DNA of 64,000 nt from Styela clava (lineage: Eukaryota): positions 9,486,001 through 9,550,000 of the forward strand of contig NC_135263.1 in NCBI RefSeq assembly GCF_964204865.1, written 5' to 3'. The position numbers were made by a program, and so were the translations under genes. Positions within the stretch are counted from its first letter, which is position 1. Each line of letters begins with the position of its first letter. Under the pieces are notes generated by a model. That model had not been told where the DNA came from and made no database searches. It worked only from the letters and a program-made list of their open reading frames with translations. Positions 29,574 to 42,836 of this stretch are shown here, in pieces.

Positions 29574-30296
29574 ATGGCTAGTAGGCTGAAAACATGTTAC
29601 AGGAATGTTCTACCACCATCTTGCATTCCATTTACATCTGACAAAGGTAAAAAATATTTTAAGGAAGCTTTGCCAACGGGTCACATGAACTGCTACTTTG
29701 TGATCGGTTCTCAGTATAAAACACAAGAAGAACCTGGTGGTTATAGCGGTTTATCATCTCTTGTAATGGTTCTTAATGCATTTCATATTGACCCTGGAAT
29801 TGTTTGGAAATGGCCATTTCGTTGGTACCATGAGGATATGTTGCATTGCTGTACTCCTCTTGAGGAAATAAGGAAAAATGGCATTTCTATTGAGAACCTG
29901 CTGCGTTTGGCAAGATGTAATAACCTTGAAGGCCATGTTAAACGGTTTTCCGTTGAATCCAACATTGATGAATTTAGAGATGTAATCAAAAATGTAACAC
30001 TGAAAGAAGATGTAGCTATGATTTTATCATACAATCGTTCTACTCTTGGGCAGATAGGATCTGGCCATTTGTCACCAATTGGAGGCTACAATCCTATCGA
30101 AGACAAGGTTCTTATCTTGGATGTTGAAAGGTTTAAATATCCACCACATTGGGTTTGTTTGCATGATTTATGGAATGCCATTAAGAGCATAGATGAATCG
30201 ACAGGACTTCCTCATGGATATGTGAAACTGTGGAGGGCTGATACCATCATAGGGGAGAAATTATCCTGCAATTGTTTGGAAAGAAAGAAATTTTAA
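29574..30296 (+). CDS. Phytochelatin synthase-like protein, half-size (240 aa, catalytic domain only), catalytic Cys->Ser
   Basis: Intronless ORF with TQEEPGGYSGLSSLVMVLN, WKWPFRWYHEDML, SYNR, GSGHLSPIGGY and LDVERFKYPPHWV. Colinear with the N-terminal half of the downstream PCS. Confidence 0.88.
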   Translation: MASRLKTCYRNVLPPSCIPFTSDKGKKYFKEALPTGHMNCYFVIGSQYKTQEEPGGYSGLSSLVMVLNAFHIDPGIVWKWPFRWYHEDMLHCCTPLEEIRKNGISIENLLRLARCNNLEGHVKRFSVESNIDEFRDVIKNVTLKEDVAMILSYNRSTLGQIGSGHLSPIGGYNPIEDKVLILDVERFKYPPHWVCLHDLWNAIKSIDESTGLPHGYVKLWRADTIIGEKLSCNCLERKKF

Positions 30297-31238: not shown

Positions 31239-32663
31239 ATGATGGCTGCTACTGCGAAGAAAACATTTTACAGGCGAGTTTTGCCTGACATCTGTACCGC
31301 ATTTGCATCTGAAAGAGGCAAGCAATTGTTCAAAACTGCTCTTGCCACTGAGCACATGAACTGTTACTTTCCACTTGCTAGTCAGTTCAGAACACAAGAA
31401 GAACCAGCATACTGTGGTCTCTCATCTCTTGTCATGGTTCTTAATTCTCTTGCAGTCGATCCAGGTGTGGTTTGGAAAGGGGTTTTCCGTTGGTATCATG
31501 AAGACATGCTTGATTGTTGTTCTCCCCTAGAAGAAATTAGGAAAATAGGTGTTCCTATGGACAACCTGATGTGTTTGGCACTGTGTAATCAACTTGACGG
31601 GGAACTAAAACGGGTGTCTGACACTATGAATATTTCAGAATTCAGAGAGGATGTGAAAAATGCCACAAAAAGCACCAAAATAGCTATCATAGTATCATAT
31701 GGAAGAGGGGTTTTAGGTCAAACTGGCACAGGACATTTCTCTCCTATTGGTGGATACAATTCACAGGAAGATATGGTACTTGTTATGGATGTGGCAAGAT
31801 TCAAGTATCCTCCATATTGGGTTCCTTTGACAAAATTATGGGAAGCTATGCTGACTAGAGATGTAGAGACAGGACTTTATCGTGGATACATGGTTCTATG
31901 GAGGGCTGATGAAGGAGATATATCCAGCCAACCACTGTTAATTTTCAAAATTGCCCAAGGCCTGAATGCCTTTAAACCGATACTTAGAGGCTCTGGCAGT
32001 TTCTTTTTAAAAATCAAGTCATTTCTCATGGAGAGAGTAAAAGAACAAAATGACAAAGATATTCTGCGAATGATTATCACAACTTTGCTTGATCAGTCAT
32101 ACAAGCATACAGAGAGTAATGATGCAAGAGATTCTCCGAACCTTTTGTCAGTGCGAGCCACTGATGACGAAATAAAAAACTCATTTCCCAATCATGCTAA
32201 GGCAATAGGTAAGTTGATCGGGGCAATTAATGAAACACCTTTATATAAAAAAATTGTGCAGCTTTTCCCAAAAGGAATTTGTTGCAGGCAAGCGTTATTC
32301 ATAACCGAAAATGGAGAAGATATGGATGACTATTGCCAAAATAATGATTGTGTTATATGCTTGCCTCATTTTTTGACAGTATTTCTGTTATCTTTTCCGA
32401 CGGACGATGTAACACGTTACGAGGGTTGTAGCAAGAATTCAACAAAGAATACGAATGTTGTGGAAGGAACCTATCATGCCTTTTTGAAAAAAATGATCAA
32501 TTCACAACTGGTGGATGGTGGCTGTGGTTTGTGTGGAAATGTGACAAAAGAACAGGAAGAAGGTCATGTATTATTAGTCAACGAAATTACCCAACTGAGA
32601 AGACAGTTTGCTGCTCTGATTAATTTGGAGTTGCAATCAAATAAGTCCAGCCATGGATCATAG
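31239..32663 (+). CDS. PCS: Phytochelatin synthase (glutathione gamma-glutamylcysteinyltransferase), full length, 474 aa
   Basis: Intronless ORF with TQEEPAYCGL (Cys59), GTGHFSPIGGY (His) and MDVARFKYPPYWV (Asp). The C-terminal domain is Cys-rich (ICC, YCQNNDCVIC, GCGLCG) and ends in NEITQLRRQF. Confidence 0.95.
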   Translation: MMAATAKKTFYRRVLPDICTAFASERGKQLFKTALATEHMNCYFPLASQFRTQEEPAYCGLSSLVMVLNSLAVDPGVVWKGVFRWYHEDMLDCCSPLEEIRKIGVPMDNLMCLALCNQLDGELKRVSDTMNISEFREDVKNATKSTKIAIIVSYGRGVLGQTGTGHFSPIGGYNSQEDMVLVMDVARFKYPPYWVPLTKLWEAMLTRDVETGLYRGYMVLWRADEGDISSQPLLIFKIAQGLNAFKPILRGSGSFFLKIKSFLMERVKEQNDKDILRMIITTLLDQSYKHTESNDARDSPNLLSVRATDDEIKNSFPNHAKAIGKLIGAINETPLYKKIVQLFPKGICCRQALFITENGEDMDDYCQNNDCVICLPHFLTVFLLSFPTDDVTRYEGCSKNSTKNTNVVEGTYHAFLKKMINSQLVDGGCGLCGNVTKEQEEGHVLLVNEITQLRRQFAALINLELQSNKSSHGS

Positions 32664-39800: not shown

Positions 39801-41609
39801 AATGGGACCGGTACAGGGGTGTGATGAGCAACTGGGTCGGCGTCTGATTTGATCATCAGTTTCATTGGCGGCCCTTCCATCATGGGCAAAGGCTGGTGTT
39901 CACACGTATTAAACGTGCTGGCTCGGTAGTGTTCAATGAAAAAGTTCTTAAGCTGTGCGAGGTTGTTTGTTGTGGCTAGAAATGGGAGTTTGGTGGGCAA
40001 CGTAGGAGGTAGTTGGCGGCGAGGACAATCACATTGCTTTTGTGTCTGGGCGCTTGTGTGTTTTGCTTCCCTGTTGCTATTTGCGACGGATTTGTCCAGT
40101 GAAGCCGCGCCAGACGCACAATAGATGCTTTGTTTTATGTCGCCTATTTTGGGAAAGTTGTTAGAGATCATTCCCAAGGCGGTGCAAGCTTCCCTGCTGA
40201 TGAACATTTTATCGGTGCTGTCAGTAACGTATGTTATATGCCTAGTTTCAACCGCATCGCCCCTTTCATCATTTCCAGATATTCGCAGGATCGCGGCGCC
40301 AATTATGTTGATACGTTTGTTGTTCGCTGCATGCATCTTCATAATGACTGGTATGAGATCCTTGTCCTTCAGTCCACTGCGGCGGATAATCTTGATGCTC
40401 GCAAGGCAACTTTGACATCCCGTGTCGGCCATTGCCGTGACTCTGGCGACACTGCTGTTGGCCTTTAGGCAGAATCCGAGCGCTTCGTAGTCCTCTTTGA
40501 CAGCTCTTATGGCAAGGCCTATGAATGGTTGAGGTTTCGAAGGCCTCTTGGTCCATATGTCATAGACATTGTCGTATAGATGGTGATCCAGTGATATGCT
40601 TTGGCTTGGCAATCGTTTGGAATTATTAGATCGGATTGTGCCAACGTTCGCGCTTACTGAACACATCGCATCAAAAACGGCTCCTTCGCATTCAGCATCT
40701 TTGTTTGGTTTGCTAGTTCCCGTTCTTCTGGAACTATTTTTCTTCCTGCACATGTGATCATGATGGTGTTTGAGACCGCAGTGTCCACAAGTGTGGTCAT
40801 ATGCCGTACATTCCGCTTGCCTGATTTTTGGGACTGCCCTAGCGCCATGGCCGGGTTCGCCGCAGTATGAGCATTTATTTTGAACATTCCTTTTATCTCG
40901 TCTGTAGGAACTGCTACGCGCAGCTTCCGCACCCATCGAGTCGAACAGGCGTGTAGCTGATCGTTTTCCAGATTCCTTAGTTTCCACGAATAGGAAGACT
41001 TCTTCGAGTGTCATGTCCTGATTTCTGTCGCCCAAAAGATCGAGTTGTATTTCCTGATCAGCTATGCCTCGCGTGAGCACGTCCCGTAAGATAGCATCTG
41101 TATAATTGACAGTTGCTTCGCAAGAAGGGCATTTAATCTGGAATTTGCATATTCCGGCTTGTCCACGTAGGCGGGCGCCAAAAGATCGGACAGTTTCATC
41201 TCTGTCCTGTCGCATGTTATGCAATGCCACTCTTGCAACCATTGTGTTTTCTTCGCGGACTGCCAGTAGTTTTATGGCAGCTACAACGTCATTTTCTGGT
41301 TTACCTGCCAGACTGCCACCCGCTGCCTGCGTGATGTCTTTTCGAAGGGCTTCGTCGCAGCATTCCAGTAGCTGCATTACTCTATCGCTACCCTCTATTT
41401 TCGTTGCGTCAACATATTCCTTCCATCTCGTTTCAAAGTATGCCCATTCCTCTGATGATCCAGCCATGGTGATTGTTGGCCTACGCACTTTTTCCACTTT
41501 TGCAACCGGCGATGAGTTGTGTGTGATGGAATGTGCTGTTACCTGTTATCAAGGCAGCCACGATGGCATCGCTTTGGTCTGGTGTTTGGTATGTACGGAC
41601 GACGGGCAT
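36856..41609 (-). pseudogene. gag-pol polyprotein, interrupted by several stops and frameshifts
   Basis: Gag Zn-knuckles (CSYCGEPGH; CGHCGLKHHHDHMC), protease MADTGCQS, RT (FDAWNGY; RYRYRTAPQG..KCIDD), RNase H (TDWSK..YAPIEGDAL..DHKPL), integrase (HAAHQG..C..C; CADFF; SDGGPEF; NCRAE). Likely start ATG at 41609, with a 7-nt insertion near 41540. Confidence 0.88.
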
Positions 41610-41684: not shown

Positions 41685-41695
41685 GAGTTCCGTCA
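41685..41695 (-). promoter_or_regulatory. Primer-binding site complementary to the element's own LTR (candidate self-priming PBS)
   Basis: The element strand reads TGACGGAACTC immediately after the 5' LTR. Its exact complement GAGTTCCGTCA lies inside the LTR (41742-41752). The PBS does not begin with TGG. Confidence 0.7.
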
Positions 41696-41827
41696 TAGAT
41701 AGGATTGACAGTCCATTTGTTACACTTTTATTAGTAAACAATGACGGAACTCAATAATAACTGAAATGAAATAAGAACAAGAGTTAACATTAAATCACAC
41801 ACTGCACAGTCTACATAAATATTCACT
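41696..41827 (-). repeat. 5' LTR (132 bp)
   Basis: Element-strand termini are AGTG...TCTA and the LTR contains AATAAA. Confidence 0.93.
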
Positions 41828-42680: not shown

Positions 42681-42836
42681 CTACCTTGGCAAAACGTAAT
42701 ACTGGGCGGAACTTAAAATAAGATCCAATTGATTCGAAAATTCAAAAGCAGTTCGTCACTACCTTGGCAAAACGTAATACTGGGCGGAACTTAAAATAAG
42801 ATCCAATTGATTCGAAAATTCAAAAGCAGTTCGTCA
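42681..42836. repeat. Perfect 78-bp tandem duplication
   Basis: CTACCTTGGCAAAACG...GCAGTTCGTCA at 42681-42758 and 42759-42836. Confidence 0.9.

Follow-up and report, generated by a model that had tools for sequence, protein, structure and literature searches.

A gypsy-type retrotransposon clade from marine animals that most likely primes reverse transcription with its own RNA

A broken 5.1-kb gypsy-type retrotransposon in the Styela clava genome carries, where a tRNA primer site should be, a sequence that pairs with its own LTR. Dozens of related marine families carry different sequences at this position that each match their own LTR, and on this evidence the lineage most likely primes reverse transcription with its own RNA, as yeast Tf1 does. 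The element lies in a 64,000-nucleotide stretch of contig NC_135263.1 (positions 9,486,001 to 9,550,000, assembly GCF_964204865.1), which we refer to as the window, and all element coordinates below are on the minus strand of the window.

Results

Complementarity at the LTR boundary

The element runs from 41828 to 36694. The 5' LTR (133 bp) occupies 41828-41696 and the 3' LTR occupies 36826-36694 (133 bp; it lacks the first T), and the two differ by one substitution and one single-base indel. Within the 5' LTR, GAGTTCCGTCA lies at 41752-41742, followed by T at 41741 and by the polyadenylation signal AATAAA at 41732-41727. The 11 nt that directly follow the last LTR base, A at 41696, are TGACGGAACTC (41695-41685), the exact complement of this segment; if the A:T pair at the LTR end is counted, the match between 41752-41741 and 41696-41685 extends to 12 nt. 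The complementarity noted in the preliminary description is therefore confirmed. Given the base composition of the window, this 11-mer is expected about 1e-5 times inside a 133-nt LTR, and the observation is far beyond chance. As RNA, 41752-41680 is predicted to fold into a 12-bp stem that encloses a hairpin with AAUAAA in its loop, with an energy of -22.7 kcal/mol and a z of -4.9.

Comparison with other copies in the genome shows that the LTR begins TAGTG and ends ATCTA, giving termini of TAG...CTA rather than TG...CA. The LTRs of all self-type loci likewise begin TA and end TA, while several tRNA-type relatives end in CA. The target-site duplication is consequently 5 bp (ATTGC, at 41833-41829 and 36693-36689), as in all sister copies, and not 6 bp as the preliminary description had implied. 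A polypurine tract ending GGGGGGAG sits at 36843-36827, immediately before the 3' LTR, and the same tract is present in the sister families. Two exact tandem copies of a 78-bp unit occur at 42681-42836, about 850 bp upstream of the 5' LTR, and elsewhere in the window a 203-bp direct repeat at 73% identity is found at 29748-29950 and 31416-31618, in a region described in another preliminary note as a tandem phytochelatin synthase pair.

Identity of the element

The window copy is defective, with a coding region that is split over at least five ORFs in different frames. Gag, with zinc knuckles, protease (ADTGCQSC) and the N-terminal part of RT lie at 41609-39530, where the start ATG at 41609 is followed by a stop and the 655-aa ORF runs 41497-39530. 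The C-terminal part of RT with the KCIDD motif is in another frame at 39499-39173 (Pfam RVT_1, E 1e-6). RNase H and integrase (H2C2 zinc domain, rve core and C-terminal part) are split over three ORFs at 38782-37067, in which Pfam finds Integrase_H2C2 and rve. Relative to a better-preserved copy on contig C2 of the genome, the window copy has five in-frame stops. On a 1030-aa ORF of the C2 copy, Pfam finds RVT_1, RT_RNaseH, RT_RNaseH_2, Integrase_H2C2 and rve in that order, and gag-pol is a single frame in intact relatives. The best solved structures are Ty3 Gag-Pol and Ty3 RT (7q5b, 4ol8; E 5e-29), with the same PR-RT-RH-IN order. Together with the LTRs, the target-site duplication and the polypurine tract, these results identify a Ty3/gypsy-type (Metaviridae) element that is only distantly related to Ty3, which is tRNA-primed. 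An assignment to BEL/Pao was rejected because the Pfam domains are of the gypsy type.

The family is small in this 377-Mb genome, with four copies that have a 5' LTR and primer site, plus solo or 3' LTRs. A protein search returned 1,758 relatives at E below 1e-20, a count that also takes in tRNA-type relatives. The 120 best have 58-68% identity, and most are 1.3-1.7 thousand aa long and sit on contigs of about 5.2 kb. The few named hits come from a sea urchin (Diadema), a sea anemone (Actinostola), a sea slug (Elysia) and a bivalve-symbiont bin. A search of a protein atlas gave only generic RT clusters. The preliminary description had also pointed to a CIDD motif in RT and to the absence of a recognizable chromodomain. 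Both points hold: the motif is present in the window, KCIDD is invariant in 25 aligned relatives, no chromodomain is listed among the precomputed domains of the 120 homologues, and no Chromo hit is seen at E up to 1 in ten C-terminal regions.

Co-variation of the primer-binding site and the LTR

If the site is a self-primer site, related elements should keep the complementarity while its sequence changes, and this was the test set for the hypothesis beforehand. The copies within the family are too similar to be informative: the complementarity is kept in the other full copies, and the LTR segment is identical in both LTRs and in most family copies. One decayed copy (L004; L numbers denote individual loci) has two transitions that would each leave a G-U pair.

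A protein search of the same genome revealed sister families. Family B has 57% pol identity to the window element, and seven copies (L020-L026, on contigs C19, C14, C1, C17 and C16) of 5057-5060 bp were examined, all with 5-bp target duplications. Six have identical LTR pairs of 141 bp and four carry an uninterrupted 1574-aa gag-pol frame, which points to very recent activity. The site after the LTR in family B is TGCTCATAAT, completely different from that of the window element, and ATTATGAGCA, which it matches, lies at the homologous place in its LTR. The more distant families C, D/E and G (44-35% identity) have sites that start TGGCGCTGCGA or TGGCGTTG and show no self-complement. Family C (L027-L032, on contigs C6, C10, C16, C19 and C13) is a tRNA-type relative of 4910 bp with 132-bp LTRs that are identical or nearly so, a 1533-aa frame in most copies and a site starting TGGCGCTGCGA, and it is also apparently young.

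We next scanned marine metagenome contigs with an alignment of relatives, which returned 80 loci. About 25 further families in marine metagenome contigs have completely different sequences at this site, each complementary to a segment of its own LTR. In nearly every locus with a usable leader, the nucleotides at the LTR boundary are the exact complement of a segment 36-78 nt upstream in the same LTR. The arms are 11-18 nt long and their sequences are unrelated between families, as in L053, L056, L088, L093, L114 and L121. After removal of near-duplicates, 26 distinct arm sequences remain. All end in CAT, such that the partner reads ATG across the LTR boundary, and positions 4-11 use all four bases. 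One further relative, L051 (a contig of 5352 bp), has a whole LTR that appears to be only about 95 bp, among the shortest for an autonomous element.

Since those 26 arms were selected for complementarity, we also carried out an unbiased count using only elements whose LTR ends are set by the LTR repeat alone. Within the clade, 28 of 34 elements have no mismatch over 11 nt and 3 have one mismatch. The remaining three, L062, L066 (which contains N) and L122, do not fit and are unresolved. In L122 (1637-1923) and L123, the arm ATGAAACAGAT lies inside the repeated (LTR) part rather than after it, so the 3' LTR is followed by the same 11 nt, which may reflect tandem elements or a different boundary. 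L054 (60-240) is an exception of another sort, in that its site starts TC (TCAATACTGA) rather than TG and its LTR arm ends GAT rather than CAT. Old copies carry single mismatches (L004, L055, L061 and L113). By contrast, the 10 tRNA-type relatives, whose sites start TGG, have 5-6 mismatches, which is chance level. In 587 control windows of 500 nt taken from inside ORFs of related elements, only 12 had any inverted repeat of 11 nt or more with a 25-95 nt loop, and 2 of these had the CAT/ATG form.

These results bear directly on the possibility that a host tRNA, tRNA fragment or other small RNA is the primer and the LTR match is incidental. Most LTR elements do use tRNAs, and copia-type elements use internal tRNA halves (PMC6317226). 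However, the site in the window starts TGA, not TGG, as the preliminary description had observed, and across more than 25 families the site never starts TGG and differs completely, yet matches that family's own LTR. The 11-mer GAGTTCCGTCA occurs 63 times in the genome against 54 for the reversed control, and about 15 of the 63 fall inside copies of this element, so it is not enriched beyond the element's own copies. Four exact copies lie 420-750 bp apart on one strand of contig C19 (10829504-10831194), outside any known copy of the element. In a tRNA scan limited to the window, no tRNA gene is present. On the basis of the co-variation, priming by a host RNA is very unlikely.

Phylogenetic distribution

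An IQ-TREE tree was built from 44 pol sequences on 1018 columns, without an outgroup and without Tf1/sushi sequences. All 32 self-type rows, together with 5 rows of unknown type, lie on one side of a branch with 99% SH-aLRT support, and the 7 tRNA-type rows lie on the other side, as a grade when the tree is rooted at the midpoint. One change of state suffices. We take tRNA priming as the older state since several deep branches share the same TGGCGCTG site and since tRNA priming is the general rule for LTR elements. The KC(I/V)DD and DAWNGYHS motifs are shared by the self-type clade and by the tRNA-type relatives L102, L107 and L125. L027 has KCVDD but showed no DAWNGYHS match, and the more distant D/E and G families lack both. 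Along with the absence of a detectable chromodomain, these observations argue for an origin separate from Tf1/sushi, an inference that rests on domain content, motifs and the tRNA-primed relatives rather than on a tree that includes Tf1/sushi.

RNA folding and promoter-like motifs

All 17 families tested are predicted to fold into a stem formed by the two arms with one or two inner hairpins (z -3 to -8), which recalls the structured Tf1 leader (references in PMC4600332). Many families lack a canonical AATAAA between the arms. One could suggest that the inverted repeat is solely a structural RNA element, for packaging, dimerization, translation control or hiding the poly(A) signal, and that priming happens in some other way. 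The stem does enclose the AATAAA hairpin in the window, and such panhandles exist in retroviral leaders. However, a purely structural role does not explain why the downstream arm begins exactly at the LTR boundary in every family, where the primer's 3' end must sit. In addition, no alternative TGG site lies next to the LTR and the tRNA-type relatives lack the repeat. We consider this alternative unlikely.

The preliminary description assumed an RNA start at the G at 41752, which is doubtful and is not supported by the promoter-like motifs. An initiator-like TCAGTT lies at 41764-41759, so that the predicted start, inferred from sequence alone, is its A at 41762, 10 nt upstream of the paired segment, and the paired part would be nt 11-22 of the RNA. 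In about half of the 26 distinct families the upstream arm begins with AG after a pyrimidine, resembling the initiator TCAKTY (PMC3601003), and most of the others begin within 1-4 nt of such a motif, often with an AT-rich box about 30 nt upstream. This fits pairing by the very 5' end of the RNA. The window's family is the outlier. Its closest relatives, L048 and L050, have the same TTTCAG directly joined to their arms. A 5' tail would not prevent priming, because only the 3' end produced by cleavage matters, though an unpaired tail would be a difference from Tf1 and from the geometry given in the preliminary description.

Discussion

The interpretation offered in the preliminary description, a self-priming signature in place of a tRNA primer site that possibly marks an unrecognized lineage in marine invertebrates, is supported. 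The boundary between the LTR and the internal region is by definition where the primer's 3' end sits, so the arm that starts there is the primer site and its partner in the LTR is the obvious primer. In the scheme that we propose with high confidence, and which is the one established for Tf1, transcription starts in the LTR at or a few nt upstream of the segment GAGUUCCGUCA, and this segment folds back over a 44-nt loop onto the complementary site just after the LTR. The element's RNase H would then cut the RNA after ...CA(U), and the freed 3' end would prime minus-strand DNA synthesis at the last LTR base. While the analysis establishes the complementarity, its exact position at the LTR boundary, its co-variation across many families and its restriction to one clade, the RNA start, the cleavage and the priming itself are inferences from sequence.

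In the accepted scheme of reverse transcription the plus strand rebuilds the site by copying the primer. In this view a change in the LTR segment would pass to the site within one cycle, which would explain both the perfect matches in young copies and the free drift between families. The CA at the 3' end of the arm, to which L054 is an exception, matches the last two bases of a tRNA's CCA, and the enzyme may have kept its preference for a primer that ends in CA; the conserved ...CA(T) is only suggestive with respect to RNase H release of the primer. A variant of the same idea remains possible, though unlikely, in which the segment pairs in trans from the second packaged RNA or from the copy in the 3' LTR. 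The segment is present in both LTRs and would also lie near the 3' end of the RNA, and in the window's family it may not be at the very 5' end. However, the arms that start at an initiator-like A in about half of the families fit pairing by the 5' end, and in Tf1 the primer is the transcript's own 5' end (PMC4600332).

Self-primed reverse transcription has been demonstrated only for Tf1. It has been inferred for Tj1, other fungal elements and vertebrate sushi elements (PMC4600332, PMC6934838), and, from LTR-PBS complementarity alone, for plant Tcn1 chromoviruses and the TAR (Houba, Osr-1) copia lineage (PMC6317226), which belong to a different superfamily or clade and to different hosts. As in Tf1/Tf2, Tj1 and the Tf1/sushi group, the site in the present elements directly follows the 5' LTR, is not of the TGG type, and is complementary to an LTR segment that is at or near the predicted RNA 5' end, with a predicted fold-back that has inner hairpins. 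The arms are 10-18 nt, against 11 nt in Tf1. The present elements differ in having no detectable chromodomain, an RT motif of KC(I/V)DD instead of the usual YxDD, LTR termini of TA...TA, tRNA-primed nearest relatives and marine animal hosts, and in the 10-nt unpaired 5' tail that the window's family may carry. Mag-lineage and Steamer-like elements are also compact, at about 5 kb with one gag-pol frame and very short LTRs, and are widespread in marine invertebrates (PMC8905726, PMC11046912). Steamer and its relatives in bivalves have a tRNA-Leu site and TGT...ACA ends, with TGGTGTCAGAAG as the site and LTRs that start TGTAACA and end ACA in Steamer itself (PMC8905726), and the window element was not identified as Steamer because its site and LTR ends differ. 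The large survey of mollusc LTR elements does not discuss primer sites at all (PMC6238403). We found no report of self-priming in invertebrate non-chromoviral gypsy elements and nothing on the CIDD/CVDD motif, although the literature searched was incomplete and this does not prove novelty. Self-priming in this large marine-animal lineage would be a variant of a known mechanism and not a new principle.

If the inference holds, a second and probably independent animal lineage uses self-priming, and that lineage is abundant. It would explain why standard annotation finds no tRNA primer site in these elements, and it warns that LTR-finding tools which demand TG...CA ends and tRNA sites will miss or misclassify them. 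Its closest tRNA-primed relatives are at hand, in part in the same genome, giving a natural comparison for asking what an RT/RNase H needs in order to cut its own RNA into a primer. A broader reading, which we regard as somewhat more likely than not, is that a large clade of non-chromoviral gypsy elements, spread through sea urchins, anemones, sea slugs and marine metagenomes, switched once from a shared tRNA primer (site TGGCGCTG...) to self-priming independently of Tf1/sushi, keeping a primer that ends in CA and acquiring TA...TA LTR ends. If so, self-priming is a recurrent solution in animal retroelements, and the clade offers matched tRNA-primed and self-primed relatives for studying how the switch happened.
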